From Takakia lepidozioides (taxonomy: Eukaryota > Plantae > Bryophyta), in the NCBI GenBank assembly GCA_030704615.1, contig CM060733.1, positions 60,078,001-60,142,000 on the forward strand: a stretch of DNA of 64,000 nt. Direction: 5' to 3'. Of the stretch, positions 7,795-57,424 are shown in pieces; positions within the stretch are counted from its first letter, which is position 1; every line of letters starts with the position of its first letter. Position numbers and translations under genes: made by a program. Below the pieces are notes generated by a model that was not told the origin of the DNA, searched no databases, and was given only the letters and a program-made list of their open reading frames with translations.

Positions 7795-10700
7795 TTATCT
7801 GACCATCCATTCTACAGGGAATTTCTCAAACCCGCGTCCTGGGATTGTGGACCAACGTAACACCACCCAGAAGTCGAGTGTCTTGACCGACTCATTCCAA
7901 TGCCGCCACACGTTCTCTTCCTCGCGAACACCCCATCTCATTTCTGCACTCATTCTGTGCAAACTTGCCAGCCTCATTTGCTTTGTTTGCACTCTTACAT
8001 CTCTCACCACAGCACAGCAGTCACCACCAGTGCCACGTAACAGAATCACATCCCCCTTCACCGGCCACGGGGGTATACACTTCTGATTTGGGGCTAAGTT
8101 ATGGGCTGACACCAGCCTTGGCTGCTTATTGCCACGTGCCTGACCTGGCACCTGAACTGCAGGAGGGAGGGGCTCAAATGTGAGCCCACAGGCGATCGCC
8201 TTCTCCCCCAATTCTTCAAGGGTCGCAGGTGGTGGAGGCTTGGTTCGCACTCTAGGGGATTCCTTCACCTTAGGGGACTCGACATTTAGACGAGTACTTC
8301 CACGGGTACTGTGTCCGGGCTGTTGCCCAACAGCCTGGTATTGCGATTCATCAATCTCACTCATGCTGGCAGCAAATGCAGTGAGCAAGCGCCGCGGGGG
8401 CTGGATGGCAGCCTGACGGGCATTCAGCGGCTCTGGCTCCACATGGCCCTGAAGCATATGGACCACACGGCTCATGGGTGGGCGAACCGCAGGGTCATCC
8501 TGGATGCAGAGAAGTGCCACATGAATGGCACGCACAGCTTCTTTTTTATGGAAATACTCCACCTCCTCCACATGCAGCCGCTTGTCCAGGAGCTCCATGG
8601 TACGGCCTTCCCCCATAAGCTTGAAAGCCCAGGCCGGGAAGTACCACTGTTCCTTGCCAAGTGCGAAGTTGGTGTTCTCGCGCCCGCTTATAAGCTCCAA
8701 AAGCACCATACCGAAGCTATAGACGTCAGTTTTTGCTGTGACGGCTGCATGTGGAAGCAACCACTCTGGAGCCAGATACCCAGGAGTGCCACGCATGCTC
8801 GTCACCACCCTGCTTTGCTCCCTATCCATCAACTTGGCCAGCCCAAAATCTGACAACTGCATCATCTCAACAGTATCACATCTTTAGACACTCTCAATGG
8901 ACACTGAAGTCTTTAGCAGAGTGCAACTGGCATACCCACTGACCGAACTTGGTTCAAAGCCATGAGTGCAGAACACACTAGTACACAATACAGCTTCACC
9001 ATGAATGTACCTCCATACTAGCTGCTGCCTAAATGTGGGAGCTCAAAAAGGTCCAACGGAATTGCTTAACTTAGTCCAGTCACAAACTTAATTGAGTGAC
9101 TGTATGAGCAGCATATCAGAGCCCGATCCACAGAGCCTTCAAGAGGTCAAAGGCAAGGAAAAGCTGTTCGTTCACAGTAAGACACTTAGTATGTAGAGCT
9201 ATCTTTCTTCTTTATTGAGACAGTACTGTGAATGAAGAAGAAGGCCAAGGTGTGAAGAAGCATTGCAAATTCTAAGGCATACATTTGCGGGCTTTAGAAC
9301 AAACGATTTTGTAACTCACCTTGGGACAAAATTGATGGTCCAGAAGGATGTTCTCAGGTTTGACATCCAAATGGATTATATGATCACTGCACTCCTCATG
9401 CAAATATGCCAGGGCCCTTGATGTGCCTAGAGCAATGTTCAGGCGTTGCTCCCAGTCAAGCAGCTTCTCCCCCTGCACATTTTTCCCAAAAAGCCAGCTG
9501 TCCAGGCTACCGTTGGCCATAAACTCATAGACAAGCAAGCGGTGCGAGCCCTCTGAACAGAAGCCATGCAGACGAACCAGGTTGAGGTGGCGGATTGCAC
9601 CCATTGATGCCACCTCTGCCCTGAACTGCTTTTCGCCCTGCACAGATGTCTTCTCTAGCATTTTCACAGCCACGCGAGTGCCATTGGGAAGAGTCCCCTC
9701 GTAGACAGACCCAAAAGCACCATCACCCAGCTTCCGGCTGAAGTTCTTGGTGGCGCGTTGCAGCTTAGCGTACGAGAAGCGTGGAGGCAGGCTGGGCACT
9801 GATTCTAAGAATTCCGTTGGAGTAGCAGCCTCTTTAGTGCCATGCGCACAGGCTATAGCCAGCACCGCCACCCCTGCTGCACTCACTAATGCCACTACCA
9901 CTACGTGCCGCAACCGGCCCTGCACAGCAAAATTGAGCTGCATTGTCAATCAACCTGCAGAGTTTCTGGCACTCAAGCGACAGTCTCAACAGAGCTATAG
10001 TCTCATAGAGCTGATCCTGCGGCAGATGGACAACAGTGGCCTATGAATTCCCCAGTCAGGGACCAACAAAATCAATGTTCAAGAGCATGTGCCTAACGAA
10101 CTTCCTGAAGTTACTTAAGTCTAGTATCGAAAAAGTGGTGCTGGCCTTACACAACTTAGCCGCAGGTGCCCAAGTCCACACTGAATCTGTGATGATGCAC
10201 CACGCTTTCTACTTCTTTCCTGCAGCAGGCAATACATATCACCAGTTACAAGCATTCCCATAAACCACCCTCACCCTGCACCTGACAATCGGGAGATGGC
10301 ACTGAGAATAGCCCTTGAAAATAAAAACTAACTAACCTGCTTTCAGGCCCCCACCTTTCATCGACCTCTCGCTACCAAAAGCTCTTTACTTGCAGATTGC
10401 CTCTCTCCCAAAGGGGACCTGCGAGAGTGATGAACTTAGAGCAGAAAAACTAAGGGCAGGTAGAATGTGATTGCTTGCCTGTAACGATCTGCGACTCAAC
10501 TGCGTTTCTCCTACACTACTTCGTATTGACGTAGCAGCTTTCAACTGCGGTTCTCCTGGATTACTTGGCACTGAGACGGAAGCATTCGTTGTAGAGATTA
10601 TAATGCTGGCATTGGGTGAGCACCGGCTTGATTCACTTTGGTGCCTGTCAATTACTTCTCCACTTCCTGGTAGCGAGCCACTACTGTTCACACTAAACCT

Positions 10701-11765
10701 CGGCACAGTGACAATCACGAGCTGCTTCTGCCGCTTCCGCCCCACATTGTCCGTCCCTGCAACTCTCTCATTCCGAGAGTGACCACGGATATAGCGACCA
10801 CGCCAGCTCAACCCTAACGGTGCTATTCGGACTTTCGAAGATTCCGATGTCCTTGAAGTTGGTGGGCTTGCGACACGGATCTGGGTGGAATAGAATATTG
10901 CGATACAATACCGCTCCACTGTAGCAGGATTTTCTTCCTCGTTCTCACCACTAAGTAAGATACGAACATTCCCCCCATAGCATCTTGCCACTGTTCCTTG
11001 CCCATCGTGTTCGTCCATTTGGAGTACTGCATTGGCACCCTGCTGCTTCACTGCCCCACGCCTACTGCCTGTCGAGGATGATACGTTGAGGCACCTCCAC
11101 ACGTCCTCTAGCTCAGCCACTGCCAACGCGCAACAACCTCCAACAGTTCCATTGTCACCAGCTGCTTCTCTGCATCTGCACTTGTCCTGCACTCGGAATG
11201 ATGCATGCCCTGCTGCATTGTTCGCACCGTCACGGCCGCTGCTAGTATTAGTGCAAAGGTGCAGACAAAAAGGGAGAAGAGCGGCCTCGAACCGTAAACT
11301 ATCACCCTGCGCATTTGCAGCACGCTCCCTACTGCGAGCAGCTGCATTTTCACTGACTAGTGTGCTGATGCGCAGGTAGGTGCCGCGTGACTCAGTGCTG
11401 TTAGCCAATCGTGGACTTTCCAAAAATTCTAGTCTGTACCTTCGACCAGATGCATTCCATGTTACTCCATGAATGCCATCGACGATACTAACATCCGAAA
11501 AAATTCCACCGCAACAACACCCATGTATCGACGAGCCAGCGACTTCGATAGCAGCATCTTCACTATCCCTCCTTCTATCACTCGCTGCACAGCTACTACC
11601 TCTGAGCCTACCACTAGTACTGGAGCTGTCTTCACCCAAAACTAAAATTAAAGAGGAAGAGCCATCAGCATTCCCAAGCACAGTGTTCAACTGCAGCAGC
11701 AGCAATGCATAGAGCAGCAAGTGGGAATCACACTGAGACAGCTTCCTTCTGCCCAGGACCTTCAT
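7795..11765 (-). CDS. Receptor-like kinase with SD-2b-like non-RD kinase domain; exons 11765-10419, 9919-9320, 8856-7795 (1002 aa)
   Basis: Signal-like LLLYALLLLQL, TM VVVVALVSAAGVAVLAIAC, kinase motifs GDGAFGSVY, VAVKML, HLDVKPEN, DFG, GTPGYLAPE; GT-AG junctions all phase 0. The exon1-exon2 join is inferred from splice signals. Confidence 0.8.
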
Positions 11766-12661
11766 CTCTTCTACTTAAGCTTCTCCCACGTGCATTGCAT
11801 CAACGTAAAACTTCAACTTTTAATCTGCCAAACCAGCTGCAAGCTGAGAGAGACGACTCGCTACAAGCCCAGTCTCTCCGAGACCCCGAGATGCAAACGG
11901 GATTAGGGCTGTGTAGTAGCCATGGATTGCAGCAGCAAAGCGCAGCTGCTGCTGCCATAGCAGCCTGCTACACTCCAGCTGCTGCGGCAGGCACCGCACT
12001 CTAATAATAGCCCTGCGTCTCTGCCCTTTACCTCACCCTCTCCACCTCACCACCCCGCACTGCATCTACTTACTCTTCTCTCCCATTCTTCTTCCGTCTC
12101 TTCCCTACGATCGAACGCGATCCGTGATATCTCGGATTTGAACTCGGGTCACCTGCGCCACATTTAGTTGGTATATCATTATGTTGATTAAACAAAATGC
12201 TATTTTCAGCAATAAAATAACGTTCTAGGTAGTCCAGTTGGAAAGAGCATCCGAGACGCCGTGGGGTCAACTCCTGAACGGCACGTTATTACGTTAGAGG
12301 AAACTCTGAAGGTCAGTCATTAGTGCCTCCCGAAAAAAATAGGTCTCGTCTTTGGAGCGCAGTGGGCACGTGGCGCCCATCCCCTCTTCTGACATAGGCA
12401 TCACGCTGCACACATGCAAACCGGGATGGGCATTTATTTCGGATGGATGAAACCGAACCGAGGGTATGTACGCGGTGTTCGTTGGACGCTCCGCTTTTTC
12501 TGATGTGGCTCCTTCTGTTAGAACAGTCGTGAGGATGGTCTCGTCTCTGTCCTCCTGCTGCGTTACTGTCAGCACGGATGAAGCCATCTCTCTCTCTCTC
12601 GCTCGTTCTCTCTCTCTGTATCTCTCTCTTTCTCTGCAGCCTGTCTCCAGAATTGTGCAGA

Positions 12662-13946
12662 ATGGATCTCAATCTGCGCAGCGATACGCGCAGTTTTCTG
12701 CGTATGGAGGGGGAAGTCCCGCAGCGGAAGGTGAAGCTACAAACCATATGTCCACTAACTTACAGATGAGGTTATTTTGCCAGAGTGATCACCATGACAG
12801 AGAACTCACTATTACTTGGGTGTGTTGCAGGTGAAGGCTGAGTGTTTATTACATGGACAAAGTAAGACAGCTTTGGATTGCACGTACATATAGGAGGAGA
12901 AGACACGGCTCTTCTGAAATGTAAAGAGAGGGAAGAAAAAGACGATGATAGTTGCTAGTTGCTACCCTGGGGGTTGCCAAAGCATGACGTTCAACGAAGT
13001 GTCAGCAAGGCACAGTGACAGTCGGCTCTCAGCTTTTGGGCTCAACAGTACCTTATGGAAATGGTGATGACAGATGGAATACTTGGAAAGGAATACCACT
13101 TCCATAACATGCCAATGCCCTTAACGTGTATTGACTGGTTGATGGACCTCTTTATAAAGACCCTCCAGCCTTGTTCAGGGGCAATGCTACCATGTTTAGA
13201 CATCTTGAAGTGTTCTTCGAACTGGAAATTTACAACATGTCCTCCTGTCTACATCATTTACAACTGAGCTTCCTAGAGTGCAAGTGTGAAGATTTTAGCT
13301 AGTACCATGCAAACTGGGGAACACTTTACCCCTAGTCGCAAAGCAACCTTCACAAAGAGGAACCACTTAAAATGAAATGATAGGAGCCGATCACCCCCTG
13401 CGTGCACCGTGGAAACTGCACTGAAAAATCAATGCGAGCCGTCGTTCCTCCACTTTTACCTCACGTCAATAGCACCCTCATGCAAGTCTGCCGTCGTCTA
13501 TATCATGACCCTTCTATGTCATTACCTCTTCTACATCATGAGGCTCGGTACTACATGGAGTGAGAGATAACATAAGTCTGCTTGCTGTAACCTTGTAGAC
13601 ATTTACAAGGAGGGCAGTCCAGGTTACACAGACAGGACAGGAAAGCTGAGACCTTGGTGTCTGAACTCTGATGATCCTCCAGAAGCCATTTTACCGGGCA
13701 GATCAGAACAGCAGGAATAATGCAGGGGCTAATAACTGTGATTGTAGGTGAACAAGAACTACTGTGGGCTTACAGGACAGAGGGCCAAACAAGGAGCCAC
13801 CAGATTATGGACTCTCTTGGTCATATTCAGATGTCCCCCCACCCTTCCCAGCCTTCTGTGATGGTGGGAATGCCAAAGTGCACCGTGACCATAGAATCTA
13901 TCCGGTGTGCAAAGATCCAGACCACTCATACCTCAAACAAGAATAA
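12662..13946 (+). other. Possible small multi-exon gene of unknown function
   Basis: CT-rich leader 12588-12635, ATG at 12662 with phase-0 donor at 12731, acceptor TGTTGCAG at 12830, donor GTAAGA at 12872, protein-like terminal ORF DRGPNKEPPDYGLSWSYSDVPPP; I could not assemble a full open model. Confidence 0.25.
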
Positions 13947-16830: not shown

Positions 16831-19800
16831 TTTCTCACTTCATGCGCACTGGTCCCTTTCCTTACTTCCCTCCGCACTCCTTTCTCGTTGGTGCATTACC
16901 TGTCAGTAACACCCTCTCCTGGCTTCCATAAGCTGTATCTCTGTGCAGGGTTCAGTCACTGCATAGCGCCCACACACACACACTCAATAACCAACCAGCC
17001 GCAGTATCAACGGCTCCCCCCTCCCCCTTAAGCTTTATCCACGTTTTGAAATGAACGCAGCATTGAACTCCCCGCATGGAAGCAAACTCGAGAAAAATCA
17101 CAACTTCAGACACACCGCCTCCAAGAAACGGCACCGAATGGTTGATTTTACGTTCACAGGAGTTGACTGCAATGAAGCATACATTCTGCTGCATTTGGAA
17201 TCCAAGACCATCTTACAACCATCAGAGATCTCACTTCAACTTTTCTTGAAAAACCTCACACTCTACACGCTAAGCTAAATAGCTTGGCCTACCTGTCTTC
17301 TGCTACCCGTTTCCCCTTGCAGGCCTTACAGCATACTCCGACACCATGTCGAGGCCTCACAATTCATGCCCCCGCCGCATTCATCTCTTCCAGAATTCCC
17401 CGTCACACAGCCTGCCTCCCCCATTACAGGATTGCAGCTCAACACTTTGAAGGGGCCCAAATAAAATTCAGGGAGATTCACATCTGACGGAAAAATCCCC
17501 ATTTCCCCCAAGGCACTAGCTGGACACGATGCACATCATATCAAAAGCAGGATGCACAAAAAAAGGTTTAAGCAAACAACAGCATCAAGCGCACATCCGT
17601 GAGCAGGGGCACTCTCCCCACATGATAAGCCAGGAGAGAAGATCCACTTACCGTTGGGCTTCACTGCTGTGCAGGCATCCGCCATCGCCACAAACTCGTA
17701 TAAACAATCCGCAATGCAGAGTGTAGAGTGTGGCAAGTAAGACGGAGCGCTGGATAGCGTCGATACGCCTACTACGCTATCCTGTTAGTGACGTACGACA
17801 CTCACTAACCCTCTTCTCCATTTTTACTATATTTTTTAAAAACAAGCTGTTAACTGCAATATTGAAAGTTCCGACTCAGGGCCACTAAATAAAACTGTTA
17901 ACCAGAATGTTTTTTAGTAATAGATTTTTGTTTACAGAACAGGGGACAGTGGCCCTTGGGAATTTTATTGATAAGGTAAGGAAAAAATAACCTTCCAAAA
18001 AGCCATGAAGGCAGAGGAACGAGGTAAACCAGTAACATAATAGAGAGGATCACAGCAAAGAACAGGCATAGGTGCTGGGAGGTCAGAGAAGCACCACAGA
18101 AGCCAGAATAAGAGAAGTCCTGAAGAATTAAGATAAGGAAACATATAACATTCAAGGGCCTAGGCTGTTCCCTGTTTTAAATTTAAATTTTTTAATTACT
18201 AATTCCGATTTGTGAATAGTGATATCTACTTTCATCCAGAATAAACTTGAGAATTCATCAATTTATTCTTCATAAATAGTTCAATAAGAGAGATGTTACC
18301 TGAGGGAGGTGTTACCTGGAGGCACCAGTAGTAGTTTTCAGCAAAGGAGATGAGGTGACACATGAGGAAGGCACAACAAGGGCTTAGCGATTTTCGACAC
18401 TGATGAGTAGTCTCCTCTTTAAAATATAGAGAAGCCAATAGGTAAACCATATAACCAAAACCGTGTATGCAAGGAGGCTAGTATGAGTGACAAGAATGTG
18501 GCTCAACACTAGAGGAGAGGAATTAGTTCCGATTTACATCAAGTAGAGTCAAAATCCTTTGAATCTATTAATCGGATTTGCATCTTGGCTTGGCCTGGCT
18601 TTGCACTTGATCTGAAGGCCAACAATTTAATCCTACTTGGCGTCTACATGGCGATGACTTGGGGCTAAGACTTATTATTCCCTCATGGGTTTACAGTTTA
18701 CACACGGTATTTTTAGCAAATGAAACATTATATTATTTTGAAGTTTCATAGGACAATGAAGGGGCTGGATAGAGTAAAAGAAGGGGGAAACAATTATATG
18801 ATGCCTCCTCCGAAGGGAGCGTTAATTATGGTGTCTCTTGACCCCGGAATTCCGGCGGGAAGGTGGACACCTTTGTGACCCAATTGGTGGAATGAACCCG
18901 GAACCACTGCCAAGGTGGAATGTGCCCATTACCGTAGGCTACAACTTGGTTGTCAAGGCCAAATGAAATCTTGGCCTCAACCCCTAATATAAAGTGGTGG
19001 TCCTTATCTTTCTTCAACTCGAGAGAGATGACTCTTACAATTGCATTCATAGTGTAGTATATGCTAGTATTCATTTGGTATTCGTTATACTTGCCAAATG
19101 ACAAATTTAATATATATATATATATATATACTTTCAATCACATTTGAATTTAATCAGGGTCAACCGTGAGTGTAGGCCGTATGGCAGCCTATGGGCATCA
19201 AGGGTTTTAATTTTTTTCCCTTCAATAATTCTAATAAAATTACAACCAGGTATAAAAGCCTGCTGGCTCCCTTTCTCCCCCCTCTCTCTTCGGCATCCTC
19301 CCCTTTCTGATCTTTGGCTACTGTGTGTCCCCATGTGTTACGCTTTTCGGCTCCGCAGAGGTTATTTTTTCCTCCTTCTGTTCCTTCGTCTTTTTTAATA
19401 AAGATTTTTAGGGCCCTGTCCCCTATTCCCTAAAATTTAAAATTAAACTAAAATTATAAACATGAACAGCTGGCACGGTAAGAGCAGGCCTTTGTGGCCG
19501 GAGTAACCCCATCTTTGCTTTCTGGATATCTTTCCCATCTCATTGTTCTTCCTCATGGTTATGAGGATTATCCTTGCGTCCAAGCCTTATGGCAGCCTTG
19601 GGGCTTGTGTAAGGGTTATCATTTTTTTCCCCTTTAGTAAATATTAATATCGCTCTCAACTTAGCTCTTCCTCCCCTTAGAGCGCTTTAAATGCCCATAT
19701 TTAACCCTTAATTTCCCAAGCCCTTTTTGGTTTTTAAACAATTTGGGTACCCAGTAAATTGCCTCCAAAAACCAACCAAAAATCATCCATGATTCCAGCC

Positions 19801-19894
19801 ACATAGAAGTGGGCCCAACTCATTTATGCACAACATATCAAAAAATGAGCCAATTCCACTGTGGGAATTGTGAGATTATAACATTGGCCCGAAC

Positions 19895-20602
19895 CGGTGT
19901 TGGGCGTTTCTCTAGTTTTGGGTAGAACTGTGTCAAGGTAGGTTCTATCGTAAATAGAGAACATCCGGGCCGGGTACTTAAGAACATAGACAGTTAGAGA
20001 ACCTGGGTGGAGGGTAATTCTTCTGAGTTACATTTTCACGGGTATGTTTTATACCGGTTCTTTTTTGCAATTATCCGCCAAATCCGGTGGTCAGGTATAT
20101 GGGTATAGAACCGAGAGATGCCCCAGTTCCAAATCCTGGTTCTGAGTTCAAAAGTTATTATGGACAGAATAAATAAATAAATGTGCATGTATGAAATGGC
20201 CACAATTGTCAATAATTAAGCTCATTTTCTAGCACACTAACACTAACTTCCTAGATTGCTCTATTGGCCCGTTGGCATTCAGTTCTAGCATTTTTCACTA
20301 CCCTTCTTCTTCCTCAAGGCGTCCACGCTAACCTTAAGTATGACCCCCCCGCCCTTATACCCAAGGTATGTGTCGGGGTTGCTCCTTACCCTCCCTCTCA
20401 TTCCAACTCGTAGGTCAGGTTCTTATGGATACTAGCTATTAGAGAACCCCTGATTTGGTGAAGTTCACGGGTAATAGATTTTGGTATCCGCTGGTTCAAA
20501 TCTTGACTAGGGTATTTGAAATTTTTAAATCCCGAGGTTAAGGGGCTGTACCCAGGTCCGGACCGGGAGGTTCTTTCAAAACCAGATAACCGCCCAACAC
20601 CG
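19895..20602. mobile_element. Non-autonomous hAT-like MITE
   Basis: TIRs CGGTGTTGGGCG / CGCCCAACACCG, extendable imperfectly to about 26 bp; 8-bp TSD GCCCGAAC (19887-19894) / GCCCAAAC (20603-20610), one mismatch; internal GAACC/GGTTC motifs. Confidence 0.8.
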
Positions 20603-21669
20603 GCCCAAACCTCAAAAAATAGGTTTGACCAAATCAATACCTGGCTTTATCCAATTTTGCTTTCCCATACCCAACCATTTTCCAATCAGAGTGGAATGGC
20701 TACACCCCGTCTAAATTGCAGGTCCAACTGATTTTTTTTAACTATGGTTGCTTTGTATATAATTACATAGGGGTTAAAGTCAAAAAACATTGACAAGGGA
20801 AAATGTGCCTCCAAATGAAGTACTTTTTTTTCTACAAAAGCTCTAAAACCCAGCGGTGTATGTGTGTATGTGATGCTCACACACCACAAGACGAAGTGAG
20901 TTTTTTTTTTTTTTTTTTAAATTTTATGAACTTTATTAATTTTACAACTTTGGCTTGTTTACCTGCCACGTCAGCGGGTCACAAGCCCTTTACACTGCCA
21001 AAATCTGACATAGTTATCTTAGATATTTTCTGTAGGTGGTTTTTTCATTTTTCATTTTGCATCATATTGGAGACAAGTCCTTTGTCGTAAAAGCTTGAGG
21101 AGTGGGCCCCATCAGAGGAGATCAGCTGAAATTAGGTGGAAGTGGAAATTCAGAGCGACCCCATTCGGTCGCTTGGGAAATTAAGGGTTAAAGAGAACTT
21201 CTCCCCAACGTATCCATCCAGACTGATCAGATGTTCCAAAATAAATTAAAATCATAAAGAACAACAATAAGAACAGAAACAATTAAAATTGGAACATTAT
21301 TAACTAGAATATTTCTATCGATATAAGACATATATTCGACAATTGTCATGCTCGCAACACAACTACATCATTGTCTAGCCACATAACATAGTAATACACT
21401 ACAAAGAGTCATATCAAAAATCTGCTTCATCTCTATCGTGTAAATAACATGTATCAACTATCAACCCATATTAAATCCTCATTTGTCTTTTCCGTCACTA
21501 ATTATGTCTCTATTTCTGAGTTAGTTTCATACTGCACAAAAAATTATAAATAATTTGAAAACAAATTCAAAAATCAAAAATAAATAAATTGGATGTGAAA
21601 CTAGCTTTAACATAGTCATTTTATTGCAATATGTGATCTTCAATTGAATGTGCTTCTCATTGTTTAATA

Positions 21670-22271: not shown

Positions 22272-23914
22272 TATCCTATAATGAGAGGCATTGAATGTGA
22301 GTTGGTTTTCTATTAGACGTTGACTATTGCCAAAGAAAGCATAATTCATGAAAGCAGAACTCCAAAGCGCTATTGTATTTTGTTAACCTCATAACGGACA
22401 TAACCGAGGCAATGTGGATCCCCAACCCTCCCCGAAGGATTTAAAACATCCCTATGTACCCACGCATTATGTAATTGATTCATCCAGTTGTAATCCTCTT
22501 TTCTATAGCAGGGTTGGTCAGAATGGCTGACATCTAACATACACCTATATAGAGCTTTGAACCCACAACCATTTTGTGTCCTAACCATTAGGTCATTTGT
22601 TGGATGTCGTTTCCATTACCTAGACATTTGGGGGGTCTTCGTCAACATCAACATTGTCTCGTCGTGTTCGCTATCTTTGTCCAAAATGACAAAAAATATT
22701 AATGTATTATTCTCTTATCATGGTAGTAACAAGCGGTTAGTCCCGTAATGGCTCCACCCTAAAATTCATTTCCTTAAAATTTTATATTGAAATAAGATAA
22801 TCACATATTCAAACTATATTTCAAACATGTTCTGCATAAGAGACAAAAATATTTATTCACCTATTTATAAAGCCTGGGATATAGGCATTGGCAGAACTTA
22901 TTGATTTATGAATTAAATATTGATGTATGATATTACAAAACTGATCTTCGGATTTACTAATTATGAAAATATTAAAATGCTTGTTGAAATACTAACTGAA
23001 ATGTTGAAATACTTGTCAAAGAACTAGCTGAAATATTAAAATACTTGCTGAGAAATCTGGCTGAAATACTGAAATACTTACTGAAAATCTTCATTGAAAT
23101 AATGAAATACTGAAATTTTGATGTACTGAAATATTATGATATGGTTATAGAATGTGATGTCACTCTTTAATCTGCAGACACTGCCCTTACCAAAGTGGTG
23201 TACTATTTCTATCCCTTGATATTAGAATTTAGGTTGTGACGTTGTGACACTCCTATCGTAATGGGAGTAAAGTATGCTAGAAGTACATAATCTTTTCTCA
23301 TGAACTACTGCCTAATCATTGTGTGTAAGCATTTCGTTTATCCAAGTGAATGACACCCTATCTGGCTGCCCCTCATTCTCACTCAAAGGCAGAATAGGGG
23401 CAGAATCACAGAGATTGTTTAGAGCATTCTCACACCCCGCAAAAACCCTATTGCTGTTATGACACCCAAGATACCCTAGAGCAGCTATCTTTCACTTGCA
23501 TTCTCTTTTGAAGGAAGAATCACATAGATAGGTAGTGTCTTCCCCCCACATTCAATGAAAAACCCTACTACTATCGTGACAACCCCTTAAAACCCAGGAG
23601 CAACACCCTTTCATAACCCACAATGCTGGTGCCAAAGAAACATGAACAATATCATACTACACACTTTGTATTTCCAGGTTATTGCTAAGCCTCCCCTCAA
23701 TCAGCACTCCAAGTGACAACTACATTGTCTCACTTTCTCTCAACACTTATCTGGTCTGAAAATCATCATAAACTTCATTCCTTTTACCAAATATTATTTC
23801 TTCCTTCGGACTTTCTAATCCTAAAACCAAGTCACAAATAAAAGAAGAAGCAAAGCAATTGAACTTAGCTGGTTTATATTCCTTTCAAGCAGTGGAATTC
23901 AAGTGGCTAGACCA

Positions 23915-26900
23915 CCTGGGGGGTGCACTCCAGCCAGTATGTACCAGCCACGTGCGTGCACAGGAGGGGGTATTTTAAACCCCCCCCCCATGTACAACAT
24001 TATACATACATGGGGGGGGGTTTAAAACACCTTAAATATAATATTACAGGAGGGGGTTGATAAGTTTTAAAGGGTAGTCTAGTGGTAAGGACGTTATTTG
24101 GGTCGTGATACACCGCGGGATCAAATCACGGGATCATTCTTTTTGTTTGTTTTTTTTCCTTTCTTTCTCCCCGCGATCTTTCTCCCCTTCCCTCCCGCGG
24201 GCTCTCTTCTTCCTCCCCTCCTCTCCTCGCCTCTCCTCTCCCCTCCTCTCCCGCGTTCTTGGGAGAGTCAGCTTGGTCTTAGCAGGTCGTTTCAATATTT
24301 GCCTGCTCAGCTGCACCGTGGTGGTTCTCAAAGACCAATCCGACATTACTTGACTACAGACACCAGCAGCTCACAGAAGAGAGGTCATTTTGGGTTGATG
24401 GGAGGTCAAATCCTCCATGGGTCATGACACAATGTCAAGGACAACGTGGTGAGGGAACCTTCTTCTTCGACCTATTTCAGCCTGTTTTGCCCTCTCATCA
24501 GACTCGGCCCTGAATTTGCAGCACGGAGCAGATCCTTCACGATTGTGGGACAACTGCAATCGCAAAGTGTGGCGTTTTCTTAAGGTACGATGTGAAGAAG
24601 TTTGTCCATCCTGCAAATGCAGGCTCTTGCCTCCTGTTAGTACCCTGATTTGGTATTCTTCCTAATGTTTACAAGGTTCTTGGGAGAGTCAGCTTGGTCT
24701 TAGCAGGCCATGTTTCAATCTCTGTCTCTCAGCTGCACCGTGGTGGTTCTCACAGACCAATCCGACTTGCAATCGTCTGTCTAGAATTGCAGACCTATGT
24801 ACAGGAGCAGGAACTGGATCAATATGTGTGGTCACATCCAAGTTAGGAGTCTTTGAGGTATAGAATTCAGACCAAGAATCTGATTTCCCTGCTTTCTGAT
24901 CTGTGTCTCTGTGTTCTTGAACATGCTCAACTTGCCAGCTCCCAGCCAAACCATCAGCACAAATGCCAAGCCTCCATTTCCAGCCTTGCTTCAGACGCCG
25001 ACCACAGTCAAGAGCGAAGGAGCAACTTCCCAGCCATTGGCAAGCACCTCCCAGGTATCTGACGGCATTACATGGAACCCCAATAGCAACACCATGTTCA
25101 AAGCTGCTCTTCAACATGTGCTCTCTCCTTCTCCAATAAACACCAGAGACTGGATTCCTCTTAGTTAAACACCTGACCTTTTCTTCCATGTGCTTTTCAA
25201 TTTGCAGGTAAACAAGAAAGTTGGAAGACCTCCAGAATCGCGCACCATTGGTGATTGGCTGGCTGTAAGTCTAACTTCATGAATTTCTTGTTATTCTCAC
25301 ATTCATGACCTGTACATATACCTAGAATAAACATCTTGATGCCTAAGTAATCTATCCGTCTTTCTTCTTTACAAATAAGATAGGTGCTCCCGCGGGTGAT
25401 TTTGAATGTCGAATGAAATTCTTTGACAAATTTTCATCAATGTATTCGCGTAACCGTGCACTCTAGGGCAATCTGGAAGCAATGTCTGCAAATCGGACAA
25501 TCGTGTACAGAGTCAGGTCTGCTGGTTTGCCTTATATTCGAGAGTACGAGTTCCGATTGTGTTGTACATGTACCACATGTGCAGAAAACACTGAATTTAC
25601 CCCTGGATGCGCTGGTCCGTGGAGTGGAGAAGGAAGGCAATGACAACGAGCAGCTGGTCAGGCAGGTCGACAGTCTTGGGAGTATTATGGCATGGCCGAC
25701 CTTGTTGTCGCCCCTGCACTTAAAGCACAGAAAGAGCACTGAGTCCGTCACATCCGTAGACTCTTCATAAACTTTTTTTCTGCATGAATGCTCGTTCACA
25801 TGACTTCTACAAGCAGACTCTCTAGGATTTGACAATGTTGCATGTGGTCACACTCGCCAGAAATCAGGCTTTGAATGAGGGAGGTTTGCCATCAGGTTGG
25901 GCTTGGTATTTTGGTCATTGTCATAGCCTGGGTTGGATTGTTTAGGGGAAGTATAACTACAAGACACAAGCATCACACACAAGAGGTCCTTTTGGGTTGA
26001 TGGTCGGTCAAATCCTCCATGGGTCATGACACAAGGTCAAGGACAAGCTCCAGATTACCTATGATTCCCTGTGGAAGGATAGATACAAGAAACCTGCATG
26101 GGTAGATAATCAACTTGAAGCCGTAGAAGCAGCAGCACAATTGATAAAATCAGGCACTGCTGATGAAGGCACCTTCTTCAACACATTTCACCCTGTTTTC
26201 TCTTCCTATCAGAATCGGCCCTAAATTTTCATGTTGAATTCTGCAAGTTAGTTGGTTGAGTGAATCTAGGATAGTTTGGAATGACTTTGACATGATACTG
26301 CCAATGTGACAACAGGAAAGTATCCAGAAACAGGTAACAGAGACAAGGAGAAGCTGTGGAATGAATATTTTTCTAACCCCAGACAATGGTGGGACAACCG
26401 AGGCAAAAAGGTGAATGCCTATCAGATTACCAGATGTCATTCTGAACACTGCCCCTACCCTGGTGGACATGTATGCCAAATGTGGGTGCATCGCGGATGC
26501 CAAGGGATCAGTGTTCAACTCTATGGCTGAACGAGATGTGGTGTCGTGGAGTGCGATGCTTGCAGGGTATGCACAACAGGGGTGCGGGATGGAGGCTCCA
26601 ACCTTTGAGCAAATGATGGGGGAAGGGGTGAAGGCCGCCGACATAACGTTTGTGTGCGTTTGCAATGCGTATGGCAGCCCTGGAAAGGGCAAAGAGGTGC
26701 ATGGTTGCATCTCCAAAGCTGGAATTGTACCGGATGTGATTATGAACAATACCCTTGTGGACATGTATGCCATTGTGGGAGGATTGAGGATGCGGAGGGA
26801 GTGTTCAACACTATGGCTGAACGAGGTGGTGTCGTGGAACACGATTCATCCAACCGTTGCAACCCACTCCTTTGTATGTTTTTGATTTCTTAGGCTCAAA

Positions 26901-29548
26901 CTTTGGGCCAGTTTGTTGGTAACACGATGCGGTAGTGGGTAACGATTTTTTATAGTGACTTTGTTGAGCCCACGATAGTCCACACTCGATTTTAAACACA
27001 AGATTACTTCTGATTCCATGCGGATCAATAGCTACAAGAAAATAGATGGTCAACTAAAGGCAGCAGCTGCAGCGACACAGTTGATAAAATCAGGCACCTC
27101 AACCATGACCACAGCTTCTGAAAGAGAATCAAGAGAGGGAGTCCACAATGCCTCTTCTGGCACTTCTGGGCATGTGAAGATACTTTGTGCGACAGCCTGA
27201 CAGAGGCTCTACAGACTCTAAAACAAGGAGGCAGTTCAGCAGATTCAGATATGTATGTCTGTCTCTTGCTTAAGTGCATCAAGATGGAAGGTCTCGAAGC
27301 TGGCAAACAGGTGCACACTCACATTATCCAAAGTGGATTCACGCCAAATGTTTTTCTACTCAACACCTTTGTCAACTTGTATGTTAAGTGCCGGAACATC
27401 AGGGATGCTCACCAAGTGTTCAACAAAATGCCTCAATGATCTTTGATCACGTGGAATATTATGTTGAAATGATTTACCAAGCATAGGTGTGGTAGGAACA
27501 TTTTGGAGACATATGAGCAAATGATGTGCGAAGCGGTGAAGCCCAACCACATTTGTTTGTATTTGCAATGCGTGTGAAAGCCTGGGAGCAAGCTGGAATT
27601 GTACCAGATGTCATCTTGAACACTACCCTTGTGGACATGTTTGCCAAATGTGGGTAGGTTAAGGATGTGAGGGGAGTTTTCAACACTCTGGCTGAACGAG
27701 ATGTGGTGTCATGGAACGTGATGCTTGCAGGGTATGCACACACAGGGGCACGGGATGGAGGCTTTGGAGACCTATGAGCAAATGATGGGGGACGGGGTGA
27801 AGCCTAACCACATCACAAGGCATTTCACCAGATTCAGATATGTATGTCTGTCTCTTGCTTACGTGCATCAAGATGGAAGGTCTGGGAGCTGGAAAATAGG
27901 TGCATACTCACATCATTCAAAGTGGATTCACGCCAAATGTTTTTCTACTCAACACCCTTGTCAACATGTATGTTATGTGTGGGAGCATCATTGATGCTCA
28001 CCAAGTGTTCAACAGAATGCCTCAACGATCTTTGATCACGTGGAATATAATGTTGGCAGGATGCAATGCGTGTCTGGGAGCTCTGGAAAAGGGGAAAGAG
28101 GTCCATGGTGACATTGTCAAAGCTGGAATTGTACTAGATGTCATTCTGAACACTCCCCTGGTGGACATGTATGCCAAATGTAGGTGCATTAAGGATGCAA
28201 AGGGAGTTTCCATGGTTGAACGAGATGTGGTGTCGTGGAGTGCGATGCTTGCATGGTATGCACAGCAGGGACGTGATATGGAGGCTTTAGAGACCTATGA
28301 TCAAATGATGGGGGAAGGGGTGAAGCCCGACCACATCACGTTTGTGTACATTTGCAATGCGTGTGCAAGCCTGTTAGCTCTGGAAAAGGGCAAAGAGGTC
28401 CATGGCGACATTGTCACATCTGCAATTGTATCAAATGTGATTCTGAACAATACCCTCGTGGACATGTATGAAGGGAGTGTTCGACGGTATGGCTGAACGA
28501 GATGTGCTGTCGTGGAGTGCGATGATTGCAGGATATGCACAGCAGGGGCGCTGGATGGAGGCTTTGGAGACCTATGAGCAAATGATGTACGAAGGGGTGA
28601 AGCATGCGCTTTGCATTGCATGATGTTGAGAAAGAGCTTAAAGAATCGTATCTTTGCCAACACAATGAGAAGCTGGCCATTGTTTTTGGGCTTATCAACA
28701 CACCCTCTAGGATGTCTTTGGGGATCATCAATGTGTGGTGATTGCCACACAGCCACCAAATTCATCTCAAAGATAGCTAAGCAAGAGATTGTTGTACGGG
28801 ATGCAAACCGCTTTCACCACTTCCAAAATGGTGTTTGTTCTTGTGGGGAGTATTGGTGAAATGAAATGCTTGTCACCTAATTGAATGTATTGAACTCTGT
28901 CAGCTACGAGTCAGGTTGGACTCCAACAGTGTCAGCAAAGGCGCACGAAATCTCTTTTTGGAGAGGAATTCTCAACAATAGGTTTTGAAAATAATTGGAC
29001 CTTGCGAAGGTTGAAACTGTAGAACAAGTCCAGAAACTGTCCTAGTTGATGAACAGAGGTGCAGTGACTAGGTCTTGATGGTCTTTAAGAGGGTCACTCT
29101 CTGATGAAAATACCCAGGACTGTATATCAAAAAATGGAAACTTTCTTCAGGCCTCTTGCACATCGGGCATTGACAATGTCCTTTTCCTCTTTGCATCTGA
29201 TTATTGTTCAAAGTGAGATTCCACAGCAAGTTTTATTGAGGGAAACAATTTTTTAATTAATTTATTAGATTTTATTCTATTTTTAAATAAATAAACTTGA
29301 TATAATATAAAAACATACATATACATATTTGAGGGTATTTTTTAATTATTGAAAAGGGAAATATACACACAGAAGGGTGTACTTTTTAAAAATTACAAAT
29401 TTCTATATATTTACAAGAGGGGGTTTTATAATCTTCAAAATGTATGTACAGAGGGTATAATGATCCAAGGACCCGTATACAAGGGGGTTTTTTATTAGGC
29501 GGCGAACGCACGTGATACGGACATTTTATAAAGAGTGCACCCCCCAGG
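23915..29548. mobile_element. Pack-type non-autonomous TIR DNA transposon (8-bp TSD, hAT-like) carrying PPR-DYW and other gene fragments
   Basis: Perfect 16-bp TIR CCTGGGGGGTGCACTC (23915-23930) / GAGTGCACCCCCCAGG (29533-29548); exact TSD CTAGACCA (23907-23914, 29549-29556); subterminal CACGTGCGT / ACGCACGTG; no transposase ORF seen. Confidence 0.9.
26354..28859 (+). pseudogene. Degenerate, internally duplicated PLS-class PPR gene(s) with N-terminal PDF (WWDNR) motif and C-terminal DYW deaminase domain
   Basis: LWNEYFSNPRQWWDNRGKK; PLS motifs LVDMYAKCG, ERDVVSWSAMLAGYAQQG, VKPDHITFV; DYW pieces [30 protein letters not shown] and [15 protein letters not shown]...[20 protein letters not shown]; many frameshifts and stops. 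Confidence 0.88.
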
Positions 29549-31103
29549 CTAGACCATCACCCATGTCTTCTGTCAGTGGATATCATAAAGCATGTCGTCG
29601 CAACCCTTACCAACACTACCCCAAAACAAGAACTATTGAAGCCACATCGCATGACTCCTCTTCACCAATTCAGCAAACCTATACTCCAACGAGCCAAGTC
29701 CAGGGATCATCAACACACCGCAGCTCTCTCTGGCAGTAGCACATATTACCAAGTTGTCCCTTGATTGGCTACCTTATCCCTTGCATTACTACTACCTAAT
29801 TCAGGCCATATGACAAAATCAAAGAGTCAGCATGAGTAGATCATGCACCCAAACCTTCAAGCTCTGCCCATCCTTCTCCCGCCCAGCCTCGCTTCCCCGC
29901 TGTTCGTCTCCTCGACATTTTAGGGTATTGAACACCACAGATGACGTCCATTCAACGAACATCATCAGTCAAGCAAAAACAACTTAAAACAATTTCACTT
30001 GACAGTGAATACTCTCATCACATTCGCACTACAAAACTATTTGATGCTCATTAATATCAAGAGCAATGTTAACTAGTGAAGGTATATATGTTATGTTTGG
30101 GTGTTTTCCGGTGAAGATATATCGGGATCTTCTCCCATTTTAGCGGTGATGTGTGGTCTCCTCTTAAGGGAGGAGCCAACAAATGAGTTGTCAATCATAG
30201 GCAATTGAGAGACTAAGAAATCAATGCATCCTCTTGTATCAATTATACAATGCATTGGAACTTCATCGCATACCCTTGTTTGGGACATATCTATAATTTT
30301 GATACTAGTAGGAACTACTGTGAGAGAATCTTTATATAGAGCCTCAACACCAAAGAATGATTTCAGAAAGGAGCGTAACGACACTAACAACTAAGTAAAG
30401 ATTAATGCTTAACAATGAGTAAGATGAGACCCGTGCTAAGTAACGAGCAGTAAAAGCAAGACGACTTGCATGGAGGCTGATATGATAAGTAACTGATCCT
30501 TTGTATCCTAAGTTGGGAGATCAGGGAAAAAATGAAACTTTACAAATGGGATTTCTAGACGTCAAATCGCAGGTTAGTTTGACAACCTCTTTTGAGCATT
30601 TGATGTGACGAGAATTTGTCTTCCACATAGAATGATAAAACCATTGATGCAAATCACTCGATTTGCCAAAGTATTGAATAATGTATTCATAAACCTAGAT
30701 ACGATTGACCGGTCTCTGAAAGAGTACTAAAACATCTTGTTGTCCAGAACAAAGATTTCTTTAATTACATACATGTCGATGTCTAACACATATACTAGTA
30801 GGTTGAGAATTGTCAATTGAAGCTCATGTTGGTTTATTCAAATTAAATTGAAAGATATTTGGTGAGAAGCTCAAAAGAATGGAACTCAATCAGCCATTTG
30901 CCCAACAATGATGGTTTCCATGAAAAGGTAAAATTATTAGGTCCCATCTACCACCCAATTTATGCTCTTGCTTATATCACCCAATTCCCAATATTTTTTT
31001 GTTTATATATGAGGATTTTATCTTAAATGCCATGAACATAAGAAACACAAACGGGATAGAAGGAAGAATCAAATAGAAGAGAAAGACTCCTGCTGAAGTA
31101 GAC

Positions 31104-32134: not shown

Positions 32135-33517
32135 AAGTAGACGTAACATATAGCATTACTTAATTTCAAGAGACTAACAGCTGTAAGTAACTAGGCAACG
32201 CCGTTGTCCAAACCTCCCCCAATTACTCAAAAATCCTTATGTACCCATAGATTAAGTGACCGGTATGGCTCATTAGTGAGGGCACAAGACTGCCTCACAA
32301 ATGGTCGTGAAAGCCACTAGATTACACAGGATGTCACCCATAATAGCCAACCAAGTTATAAAATAAGAGTAGCTGGGTCAACACTGTTAGAAGTATCTCT
32401 CATGTCTACATAGATACCATGCCATCTCAACTATATCGACACTCGCCTGTTCATATATGACAGTTGTGTCCATGACTGTAGTTTGTCATATAATTATATT
32501 AAATAACTATATAAAAAATTGTGAAAGATTATTCTGAAATGGATACACGCGAGCGAACAAACCAGTGTTGTACTGGTATTGAATTTTTAATATACCAGTC
32601 GGGTCCGGGTCTTGCTTTGTTATGAAATCAACCTAAATATTGTAGGGTCTGGTTTTTCAAATACAATATTGGTATAAGTATTTGCTTTGGCAGTGGTGGG
32701 TACGTGGTATCAATAATTGGGGATAATTTTTTGCAGTACCAGGGGTATATCAACTCAGGTATCAATACTTTTTGCTCCCATCATACACAACCTGAAAGCC
32801 AAGCCAAAACAGAAACATGCAGCGCACAATAGAGAATGACTAGCCAAATCACAAACATACAACCTGAATATACAAACAAAAACATACATACAAAACTTGG
32901 ATGCAAGAAAATGCAGGAAAATTGTCCCAAAAGAGACAATTTGAATTCATAGAAATATGCCAATGCATTGTTGTAGGTGGAAGTGAAGGCTTGCCCCCAA
33001 AACTTTCTCTTAAAATTATTAGAAGAAAAACCTTGAAAGAGAAAAACAACTTAAACTTAAAAAACAACTTTGTAAAAAATCATCCCTGTTCCATCCAGGG
33101 CCACAGTCCCTGTTCCCAAAAAAATAAAAATAAAAATAAAAATAAAAATCATTCTTTAAAAAAATATTTTTATTTTTCCCTTACCTTATTAATAACAGCT
33201 TCAAGGGCCACTGTCCCCTGTTCTCTAAATAAATTTTAAAAAAAAAATCTTAATGCCGATATGGGATGCTGAAAAGTGGCCATGGGGATGATACACTCAG
33301 TTCACGCAGAATTAGTCATTCATCCATTCAGTCGACCAGCAGCATACCTGGTGGATGGCTGTGGCTATGGCGGTCTGTGTGGAGACAGACATGAGAGAGT
33401 GAAGAAGGCAGTGGAGGGAGAGGGTGGATGTGCCAAACATCACTGCCCTGCGGTTTTTGATCAATCTCAAGAAGGAAGGCCACTGCCCGGATTGTTTCCA
33501 GTTCATGTGAAATAATC

Positions 33518-44775: not shown

Positions 44776-47700
44776 CTAAGATGCAAAGCTCCAGGTCGGT
44801 GAAGACGCAGATAGTGGAGGCTCTAACTCGATCACCTCTTGTTCCTGTTTCACCTGCAAACACCGACATCCCATCCACAGTTGAGACCATGGCTCCATGA
44901 TGAAACACTAAACCACTCAGAATGATCCTGACAACGTAGTCCACATGCATGCAGAAAAATCTTCTGCATACCTCTGAAGTCAGGCAGATGTACCTGCAGT
45001 GATTCAGCTATATTCATACACACGGGGTACGCTACCTGGCCAAGTTGAAGCTTCCGAATTGCACCCACCAACCGCGCATCTCCAGCAACACGTCGACACA
45101 TTTGGATAAGTTTCTTACGACACAGTCTCCCAGCCTGAAAAGATGAGAACGGTTCATCTCACTCCTAAACTTACAATTTCATGACTATAGTTGATAGAGA
45201 TGAAGTGGAATCAAGTTTTCAAAGAATGTACTCCCAAGACGTTGCCTTGTGGCCATGGACCCTACACAGAACAAAAGGGAACAGACACTACCTTTGTGAC
45301 GGGCTCACTCCTGTAATGGGACCTACCTTGGTATAAACAATTAGCTCAGGCTTTCCAGATATCCTCTAGAAAGCTGTCCGGGGCAAGTTTTGGCATACCT
45401 CCCTTGAGCTCTCAACATGACAAGTTCAAGGTTGGATGGTAGTTGCATCGCATGTCTAATACCAGATACTCTAAGATAATCAAGTCTGTTTCTTGGAAGT
45501 AAGACTGTCCTGTTAAACAGGATAAGTCTTGGGAGGACAAGGCGAGAGAGATTTTCAATTACATGAATATTAGCCCAGAAGAATCGACCCTGCTAGATGA
45601 AGCTGACCTGGAGATTGTGCTGTCTAAAGCCCTGTCGGATGCCCAAAGACAGTCCGATGAAAATGAAGCTAGGCATAAAACTTCCCTGAACTTGTTTCCC
45701 AGTCTGTGACATGGGCGAGGACCTTAAGGATGATCTTAAGGGCCGACCTACCCTAGGCACCAGACTGACCTTTAAAATCAGGGCAGGGAGCCTACCTTTG
45801 AAAAAAAAAACAGATGCAGAGAGGAAAAGGACATTGTAGTTGCCCGATGTGCGGGCAGACTGAAGACAATATCCACTTTCTGATACGTTGTCCAGGGTAT
45901 TCAGTGACCCTCTTCAGGAACATCAAGAACACTGCTTCTGCACCTCTGTTCACCAACTTTCAAAATCTCGAGGCTGAGACTCAAGCCCTGGCCTAATTGC
46001 TGGGCAGCTAACACACAGCAGCTTGATGCTTGTGTGCAGGACATGCCCTTTTAGAGCACCATAATCTGACTGGACTCTAGAGATTTAGCATGGTTGGAGT
46101 TGTCGACCCACACGATAGATGCGTACTCCAAGGCAGGCCTAATAATGTTGCAAAGAATGGTCCTTTTACCTTCAGTATTAAACCCTCTGCAGTGAAAATT
46201 TTTAGAAAAGTCAGACCCCAACACTTTGCGTTTAGCTGTTTGACCCACTTTCTGTATATGCGCCTTCCAGTTGCAACTAGAGGAAACCCAACACCAAGAT
46301 ATGTTTAGGAAGGGAGCACAGGGATCTCTTGACCTCCCCATGCCAAACTGAGATACCCTCCTCCCTCCCCACAATCATTGAAAGCCACCACTGCGCATGT
46401 ACTAACATTAGCCTCTAACCTCCACAGGTCAAAGTACCCCTTCATGCAATCAATCAACACCTGAAGATTGGATGGGGTATCCCCTAGGCCTGCGAAGTCA
46501 TCTGCAAACATAGGAGCCGGGATGGTGGCATCACCCACCTTCAACCCAAACCCCTCACTTTCCACATCTTTAAGTAGCTGATTAATGAATACAGTGAAGA
46601 GCAGTGGGAAGAGGGTACAGCCTTGAGCTACACTTTCATCAATATCAGAGAAGTTAGACTTTTTTGATATGATATCTTTTGGTGCTCACATACAGGTTGT
46701 GAACCACCCCCTCCACATGTTTCCTCTGACCCCAGAAGATCAAAGTCGAAGCCACAACCCAACTCTCCACACAGTGCGTTCTGACATCCAGGAAAAAGAA
46801 AAAAGTGGGCTTTCCTGCTCTTTTCCTTCCCTGAATAATCCGGCTTATTTCTCCAAAAACCAGCCTGGCCTTCATGGAAAACACCTCTAGACTCCACATC
46901 AACCTCAAGACGGGTACTCATAAGCCTACAAAATAGCTTGTCAACTGCACTAACAAGCATGAGGCCTTGAGAGTTCCCAGGCGCTTCTCTGTCGCCTTTC
47001 TTATACAGATTGACAATGACATCCTCTCTCCAACGGAAGGGAATCACTTCAGTCTTCCAAATAAGGTTAAGAGAAGGGTAAGAGCCTCTGCCATGGGATT
47101 GCCACCATGCTTGATCTTTAACGTTGACAATGCTATCAAGCCCACCTGCTTCATAGCCTTTCGATGTTCTATAGCTTCTGTAATCTCAGAAGAACTAAGC
47201 CAGTTTATCAGGGCCGTCTTGGAATATAGGAACAGTAGCCTTCCATTCTTGAGGAAACCCCTCACTATAATATTTAGATTCACAGCCAAGAAGGCTGTAG
47301 TGCATTTCAAAGGGTTTTCCTATCTCAACCATAGAAGTCAACCATGCACTCTTGTTATTCCTTAAAGCGTGTACTTGCTTTGCTGACCATTTTTCAGCCT
47401 GCACAAATACTGTAAGGCCAACCAGAATCAACTAATTAAACAATTAGTTACCGTTTTTCACTGAGGAGGAACAGAGTTGATGGAAAAGAGTGTATGCTGA
47501 GCACCTTGAAGGCAGCATAATGTTCCTGTAGTTGGAGGAGGTGTGATGGGGCCAGCTGAGATTTCAGAATAAGGAACAGACTGGGGAATGATAGACAGGC
47601 TGACATTGGCCCCTGCACCTGCCTCGCACATCCCCCCACCTCATCATGCCATGCTTCTGCATTCACATGTGTCTGCATACCAAACACAGCAATTAGCACA

Positions 47701-50203: not shown

Positions 50204-50996
50204 TATAGTACACAAAAAGAGAAATTTTAGATGTACTAAGTCCCCTAAAATATGTGCAACCATCTAATGCAAGCCGAGCGCAACCCTGCACCACAAGCCG
50301 GCCACCACACACACGCATCAGAAACATGAATCCTAAACAGCACGATTTTCGCAGAGTTAACACCCTAACAACGATGCATCCCTGGAAAACCTAGTCTGCC
50401 ACAGCGAAACCCTGAGCAACGGAGCAAAAACTTACAGTTGCTAAGATCCAAGGAGCACACCCATCCCCGCGCACAAGTTAGCACCTATCAAGGCACACAC
50501 CACAGCAATGGTAAGCCGTCGGCACGCAGCACACACACTCAGATCCAAAGCATGCGATGCTGCAACAGATCGCAATAAGCTTAGAGCATGTTCATGCAGG
50601 GAAAGCGTTTTCATACACAGGGTTGACCGCGGTGAGGCTGGGCAGGAGCCGCCATAGCTGCTTTCTTCCGCTGCAGGCTTTCTGCCTTCCTTGCCACACA
50701 CTCCCAAACGTAACGGCCAAGCAACGCTCACCTTCCACACCGCCCTTCCTTTGCCACCGCCCTCTTCTGCCCCTCACCGAGATTCGAACCCCGACCGCCC
50801 CCGTCCCCAGCCTAGAGCTGCTCCTACTGGTCAACCATCTCATCCCTGCACTCGATGTTTCCAGAATGAACTCTGTGCGAAAAACGAATGAGAGAATATT
50901 ATATTCTCTTACAAAAGATGCCGGTATATTACTTTATTGATTTTATTATTATTTTTAATAGTTAAAAAGGAGGACAGATGGGAGGATGGGAAGCGC

Positions 50997-51026: not shown

Positions 51027-52014
51027 AGGCGAGGACAGCTCGCGGCGCCGTGCCGCTGGCTAATATCTATTTTAGCCAGGCTATAGCCAGATCATCCTCT
51101 GGACAGAATTGATCATTCATCCACTAGGAAGAGAAAAGGCAAACAAAAGCAGAGGAAGCCTGAAGGAAGGGAGGCACAGATAGACACAAGAAGTACCTTT
51201 GCAAGGCTGGCCATGCCAGCAACACTACTCCTCCTCGGTGCGGTGCCAGCCTTGTATGTAGAGTCTGTAGCTCGACTTACTCTTGCACAGAGTATTGCAG
51301 ATGGTGGACTAGCAGCCAATTGAGCTCAAGCCTCACATGGGATGGAAATGGAGTCTTCTTGTAAAATGCAAGAATTCACAAAGGTTGCGTTGAACTGTTA
51401 CTTCTCTGGAATGTTGCCATCATCACTTCTTTCTTTTCGTTCAATTAGACAATCTATAGAGAGACATCCCCAGGAAAGTTAGAAATATTGTCTTATACTT
51501 CCACACCACCACCTACAAGATCCCAGACCTGATGCAACTGAGGCTTGCCAACCCTAAGAACGGCTCTCAAGATTGCATCTATAGTGAAGTCAATGAGGTG
51601 CTTGGACAAAAATTATGTGTTCAATTAAGAATTGTGCAACACTATCCATATCCAACTATCTTCTTCTACAATTTAAGTTTTCTTCTCCAAGTTAAATTTG
51701 GTTCCATATTTGGCCAACAATGCTTTAATGCCCACAATGGCTTAGGGAGGTGATCTGGAACTAACACAAAGTTCAAAGAGTTTCTGACATACGAGTAGGA
51801 CAATTGTGATCCATACCTTTTGCATCATCTTCTTCCTCCTCTTCTAATGACACTGACAGCATGGGGGGGGCTGCCACTCTCGTCTTGGTTTGTAAGCCTA
51901 TGGCACTGAGCCTGGCAAAGATGTCAAAAGATGACATCTGCACTGCGGTGCTCCTCGTCCTCCCCTCACTTGCTAGTGTGGGAGAGCTTCCTTGCATGTG
52001 AGAAGACTTCCTAA

Positions 52015-57340: not shown

Positions 57341-57424
57341 CTTTTGGGCCGTTTCGCTTTCGCTTCGGCTTGCCCGACCCCATTATGAGGCCAATCCCAA
57401 GGACGATCGCGTACTGAACTCTAA

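Follow-up and report, generated by a model that had tools for sequence, protein, structure and literature searches.

How did pentatricopeptide repeat (PPR) and DYW-domain sequences, of the kind found in RNA-editing factors, come to lie between an mTERF gene and an FdC1 gene in the early-branching moss Takakia lepidozioides? The question is raised by a stretch of 64,000 nucleotides of contig CM060733.1 (assembly GCA_030704615.1, positions 60,078,001 to 60,142,000 of the forward strand), which we call the window and in whose coordinates all positions are given. A sequence-only reading had proposed that positions 23907 to 29556 hold a non-autonomous Pack-type DNA transposon carrying PPR-DYW genes, and our analysis supports that proposal. 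Very probably, the element is a cut-and-paste transposon of the Pack-TYPE class that captured genomic PDF-PPR-DYW DNA, grew into a mosaic, and then inserted between mTERF and FdC1.

We begin with the ends. The element spans 5,634 bp, and its terminal inverted repeats (TIRs), at 23915-23930 on the plus strand and 29533-29548 on the minus strand, are complementary at 16 of 16 positions. They are flanked by an exact 8-bp target site duplication (TSD), CTAGACCA, at 23907-23914 and 29549-29556. A 9-bp box, CACGTGCGT, lies 35 nt inside each end (23949-23957 on the plus strand and 29506-29514 in the right end) and is a candidate transposase-binding site. Perfect TIRs, an exact TSD, and matching subterminal motifs were what the sequence-only reading had described, and all three were borne out: a 12-bp TIR with an 8-bp TSD occurred in none of 30 locally shuffled windows, and the 64 kb contain no second pair with a TIR of at least 12 bp and a TSD of 7 to 10 bp. 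The left subterminal region forms a hairpin of a C-run and a G-run at 23969-24031 (z, -2.3); the right one (29216-29532, minus strand) is AT-rich. Past position 43 there is no significant local similarity between the two ends. A long degenerate TIR was rejected, as its local score equaled that of the shuffles and only a gapped global alignment stood weakly above them (1/500).

The GG at the end of the element would also permit a 10-bp reading of the direct repeat. This is ruled out by metagenome contig L002 (33% GC and poor in open reading frames [ORFs]), on which a third end was found. The first 18 bases of this third end are the same as those of the left end, and 8 bp of the box are kept at the same offset. 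In L002, agreement with the TIR starts at the first C, and the base preceding that C is different in each of the three ends; this fixes the terminus as CC and the TSD length at 8 bp. Judging by this unrelated contig, the end family is present beyond the host genome. Of the eight metagenome pattern matches, seven arose by chance or had no relation to the element, and six of these seven were GC-rich and of bacterial type; scans of the viral and prokaryote collections for the ends gave nothing. Another metagenome contig (L001, positions 379-620) carries an unrelated element end with G-runs and TGCACC repeats that is hAT-like by eye.

Both element ends are clearly repeated in the host genome, in line with the sequence-only reading. 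We aligned contigs from a DNA run (X1) at 80% identity; the resulting depth is not a copy number. The left subterminal region (23977-24012) was matched by 22 to 36 variant contigs and the right one (at 29378) by 32, and the summed depth at these regions was 35 to 46 thousand, versus about 400 to 500 in the low-copy interior. The depth profile was the same in a second DNA run (X5). One X5 contig covers 28797-29225, running from the end of the DYW sequence through a LINE-like (long interspersed nuclear element) scrap into the right end; its identity of 97.7% and its depth, about 4 times that of the unique interior, indicate that sister copies share this junction. Depth over the 5' block of the gene family and over the PPR pieces is about 10 times that of the ends. 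The X1 contigs also contain many joints between nonadjacent PPR modules, which allow module shuffling between copies without proving it. In two runs presumed to be RNA (X6 and X8), the ratio of DYW depth to right-end depth was 500 to 2,600, versus about 2.4 in the DNA runs. The PPR gene family thus appears to be expressed and the element ends not, and there is no indication that this copy is transcribed.

What does the element carry? Six-frame reading and Pfam scans revealed no transposase-like frame inside it, as had been claimed, only retrotransposon scraps. All of the PPR-family parts are on the plus strand, and their order is close to the native one, with a pyrimidine-rich 5' block first, then PDF motifs and PLS-PPR repeats, and DYW last. 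The PPR repeats matched PF13041 and PF01535 and the DYW sequence matched PF14432; the PDF motifs were recognized by homology. The 5' block of the PDF-PPR gene family (24136-24766), with its pyrimidine tract and a PDF-like piece, has very high family depth. Parts of it are duplicated, 24255-24344 at 24676-24766 and 24353-24444 at 25956-26046. The PDF-motif block (25951-26420) has its WWDNRGKK end at 26410, followed by GT, and a displaced PLS-PPR block (26428-26850) adjoins this donor site. After an additional PDF half-motif with linker (26979-27170) comes the PLS-PPR array (27171-28602), which has internal duplications (27229-27466 and 27818-28055 are 91% identical), stops, and frameshifts. Abutting the array is a remnant of the DYW deaminase (28601-28859), split over two frames, in which HxE and CxxC are discernible.

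A functional PLS-DYW gene has an open frame, a PLS array, E domains, and a DYW domain. Here, the frame is broken by stops and frameshifts, the E domains of the Sphagnum homologue have no match in the cargo, and DYW starts directly after the last PPR repeat. The cargo is therefore a dead, co-oriented PDF-PPR-DYW mosaic, a pseudogene from which no editing factor can be made. Its internal duplicate blocks are 80 to 91% identical. The best-matching PPR proteins in the collection searched share only 42 to 51% identity with it, so the host's own proteins are not among them, and proteins of the window had no exact match on record.

The sequence-only reading named the PPR-DYW cargo correctly and overlooked its foreign pieces. 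A low-copy piece of a host gene (24767-25340, plus strand), to which a relative at 98% identity exists, includes a 57-nt mini-exon (25208-25264) flanked by canonical AG and GTAAGT sites. Two scraps of a Ty3/gypsy reverse transcriptase (RT) lie on the minus strand at 25355-25453 (55% identity to the gypsy ORF of the window; E, 7e-8) and 26930-26995 (82%; E, 5e-7). They are adjacent in an intact RT and here are 1.5 kb apart in reversed order. The interval 26930-26975 was considered as an intron acceptor and rejected, being reverse-strand gypsy RT sequence. Also on the minus strand, at 29044-29213, is the LINE-like zinc-finger scrap, which is 74% identical to 45796-45958 and has zf-RVT as its nearest named cluster (0.91, lead strength). 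Elsewhere in the window, a Ty3/gypsy gag-protease-RT frame of 703 codons occupies 55274-57382 (minus strand), and LINE remnants in both orientations (a zinc-finger piece on the plus strand and an RT-like piece on the minus strand) occupy 45796-47185, downstream of a WWE-PARP gene (48914-50263).

It had also been claimed that the element encloses all of the PPR, DYW, and PDF sequence. The pieces inside were confirmed, but "all" is wrong, as there are remnants outside. A second decayed PDF-PPR mosaic, with an inverted piece at 52957-53133, lies at 52021-53452 on the minus strand; no matching TIR pair was found for it, and a loose TIR look-alike is present at about 51860-51880. A further PPR remnant (63827-63967, minus strand) runs past the end of the window.

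Was the cargo captured as DNA or as RNA? The GT after the PDF exon end at 26410 stands at the position of a phase-0 intron in a moss OSB gene (L011), Adiantum, and Sphagnum. In DNA run X1, contigs of the gene family that continue past 26420 lack coding sequence for the motif's second half and run into a stop within a few codons, which favors an intron. There are no internal TSDs and no poly(A) tail around the PPR block. Because splice sites are retained, a mini-exon is present, and a poly(A) tail is lacking, we favor genomic capture, and with medium confidence we take DNA-level capture to be the better reading of these sequences. The fusion of PDF and PPR was not created by the element and is older than it. 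The same fusion is found in Sphagnum jensenii (L017), Adiantum (P0174 and L009), and a transcript contig (P0161), and TIR/TSD ends of the element's kind are absent from the Sphagnum and Adiantum loci and from the transcript contig. The OSB-type PDF plus PLS-PPR(-DYW) genes of seedless plants thus have the architecture and intron position of the cargo but, unlike the element, no such ends. The S. jensenii locus (L017, positions 9378-12700) consists of a PDF exon, an intron, and a PDF-PLS-E frame of 917 codons, which exceeds the recorded gene model of 328 amino acids.

The order mTERF, FdC1, alpha-tubulin (14129-38958) is shared with Ceratodon purpureus (L023), with tubulin inverted relative to FdC1. 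The element is inserted between mTERF and FdC1, an interval that is 16.7 kb here versus 2.3 kb in Ceratodon, and no PPR, PDF, or DYW match was found in the Ceratodon interval. The case that would have counted against a transposon, a cargo syntenic with a resident PPR gene, was thus not encountered there. The flanking FdC1 protein is nearest to moss sequences, and in the FdC1 tree the host is sister to a clade containing Ceratodon and apart from Sphagnum, with weak support (94/80). In Sphagnum, FdC1 has other neighbors (L020). When the element was removed in a script, a stop-free frame of 116 codons spanned the insertion point (23772-23914 plus 29557-29761). Searched apart, the halves of this frame gave nothing useful in Pfam and, in Atlas, a weak Retrotrans_gag match to the right half (0.85, a lead only). 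The insertion target may have been an old retroelement.

The sequence-only reading inferred from pristine ends and a decayed cargo that the last jump came after most of the decay. This was not established. The 3 to 4 in-frame stops in about 550 to 620 aligned codons correspond to a point decay of about 4 to 5% (95% range, about 1 to 13%). At 4 to 5% decay, an 8-bp TSD would stay intact 44 to 53% of the time, i.e., about half, and all 48 end sites (TIRs plus TSD) would do so 9 to 15% of the time. Some of the decay appears to be specific to this copy, given a distance of 2% to sister contigs; the rearrangements of the cargo may be older.

If the element is a Pack-TYPE transposon, the following course can be proposed. 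A transposase encoded elsewhere would bind the short TIRs and subterminal boxes and excise the 5.6 kb, and insertion would take place through an 8-nt staggered cut, as the TIRs and TSD imply. The family would have acquired genomic DNA of a PDF-PPR-DYW gene. Successive repair or recombination at the DNA level could then have produced the internal duplications, the loss of the E domains, and the retrotransposon and host-gene scraps that make up the mosaic; new cargo may have come in through DNA repair or through the hybrid-end route known from Pack-CACTA (PMC13317346). The resulting element would have landed between mTERF and FdC1. The family would thus be a carrier that disperses PPR-DYW sequence and, by shuffling of modules between copies, rearranges it.

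Could ends and cargo have come together in another way? That the inverted and direct repeats arose by chance is already refuted: nothing except the G-rich composition of the TIRs speaks for it, and the shuffled windows, the second conserved box, the third end on L002, and the multi-copy ends all speak against it. It is also very improbable that an old resident PPR-DYW gene simply decayed where it stood and that the two related ends flank it through coincidence. In its favor, PPR remnants without such ends are common nearby (52.0-53.45 kb and 63.8-64 kb), but two independent insertions would not have one 8-bp TSD in common, and the syntenic Ceratodon interval has no PPR gene. Somewhat more credible, although still unlikely, is that a MITE-sized (miniature inverted-repeat transposable element) member of the TIR family came first and later gained the PPR, gypsy, and LINE pieces on the spot, by retrocopying or as repair filler, so that the PPR cargo never moved with the ends. 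In keeping with this, the cargo is pieced together from the most abundant repeats, its 5' block and PPR pieces exceed the ends in depth about 10-fold, and retroposition is the published main route of PPR dispersal (PMC13386178). On the other hand, such additions do not explain a PPR block without bounding TSDs or poly(A) tail, the splice sites kept in the cargo, or the DYW/LINE-scrap/right-end junction found in other copies.

Several points weigh against a Pack-TYPE transposon with genomic cargo. No coding partner with these ends turned up in the scans of the metagenome, viral, and prokaryote collections, and no second copy could be read over its full length. The joints listed for the run contigs, which show presence only, include none across an empty site, and no empty allele was seen. 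Ceratodon is too distant from the host to show an exact empty site and may itself have lost a gene. Finally, the nine bases that open the next exon in Sphagnum are nearly identical, and splicing could have produced a similar join; the argument from the GT after the PDF exon is accordingly of medium strength.

To which superfamily would the mover belong? The usual hAT terminus is CA or TA, whereas CC stands in both ends of this element and in the L002 end; the sequence-only reading had already remarked that the element's terminus is not the usual one of hAT. The P superfamily has 8-bp TSDs, which fits the element. In its other features, hAT fits: its TSD is 8 bp, its TIRs are short (5 to 27 bp [PMC10741241]; here 16 bp), and Ac/Ds and Tam3 likewise have short subterminal motifs. 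In Mutator, the source of Pack-MULEs (MULE, Mutator-like element), the TSD range of 7 to 12 bp includes 8 bp (PMC10741241), but the TIRs are long, unlike the short ends seen here. Zisupton also has 8-bp TSDs (PMC12730594). Merlin was rejected because it requires a GG terminus with an 8- to 9-bp TSD (PMC8101967), as was CACTA, which requires a CACTA/G terminus and a 3-bp TSD. We regard hAT as the leading candidate, at a little under even confidence; another or undescribed lineage is a lesser but real possibility, and a P-like mover and a short-TIR MULE are both rather unlikely, to the same degree. The element works like a Pack-hAT, yet we do not file it as one.

The Pack-TYPE class itself is already known, and elements are on record for all main plant superfamilies (PMC8903248). 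The element has these features of the class: two TIRs, a TSD, no internal transposase, captured host coding DNA, and ends that are repeated elsewhere. The Pack-TYPE elements of Gisby and Catoni (2022; PMC8903248), Pack-hAT among them, are likewise non-autonomous, bounded by TIRs, flanked by TSDs, and filled with coding DNA from several sources. They were described in angiosperms, with no mention there of mosses or pentatricopeptides, and they differ from our element in that its cargo is dominated by one RNA-editing gene family in near-native order. A direct precedent for PPR transduplication is Cactavine-5 of grapevine, a class II transposon with a PPR coding fragment (PMC2528002). It differs in that it belongs to CACTA, has a transposase ORF, and is present in two copies with the fragment in antisense; it lacks DYW, and no role in family expansion was proposed for it. 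We found no paper on Pack elements with DYW editing genes in bryophytes in a literature search made mostly without subscription papers. What is new is a CC-ended family in a moss whose cargo is mostly RNA-editing genes.

The window has other repeats as well. Inverted ends of at least 11 bp beginning with CCC and a TTAA duplication bound 19705-21187, possibly a piggyBac-like non-autonomous element. A frame at 54075-54590 has a weak QRICH1 match (E, 0.005) and resembles a Crypton/DUF3504-type remnant. Units of about 110 to 120 bp with a GC-rich head and an A-rich tail form an array at 59599-60555 and occur singly, dispersed, at 33204-33244 and 17910-17990. Palindromic, MITE-like repeats of about 45 bp are clustered at 63234-63570.

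How the thousands of PPR editing factors of seedless plants originated is the larger question. The explanation given at present is retroposition (PMC13386178; O'Toole 2008, cited in PMC3814199), which accounts for the dispersed duplicates of PPR genes found in hornworts, lycophytes, and Takakia. This answer fits Takakia worst: a 2026 survey counted 2,016 PPR genes, mostly dispersed, with limited features of retroposition and 52% intron loss (PMC13386178). Retroposition leads one to expect intron loss, poly(A), and flanking long terminal repeats (LTRs), whereas the element has kept its splice sites and is bounded by TIRs and an 8-bp TSD. Our findings suggest that DNA transposons, besides retrocopying, helped to spread the PPR family. 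The dispersal and shuffling of editing-factor modules by such elements, which the sequence-only reading proposed, is plausible as a route; this copy is unable to yield an editing factor, and one dead copy is no proof that the route produced working genes. More tentatively, and with considerable doubt, non-autonomous DNA transposons (the CC-ended family and others) might be a main engine of PPR-DYW expansion in this moss, copying intron-bearing genes, recombining their modules, and sometimes delivering intact, expressed editing factors whose RNA specificity is new; the mover may be an undescribed lineage. A carrier defined by TIRs and TSDs is a rival route that can be counted in one genome, by the share of PPR-DYW genes inside such ends and by their introns, intactness, and expression. 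If it is real, module shuffling within carriers would account for new RNA-binding specificities.

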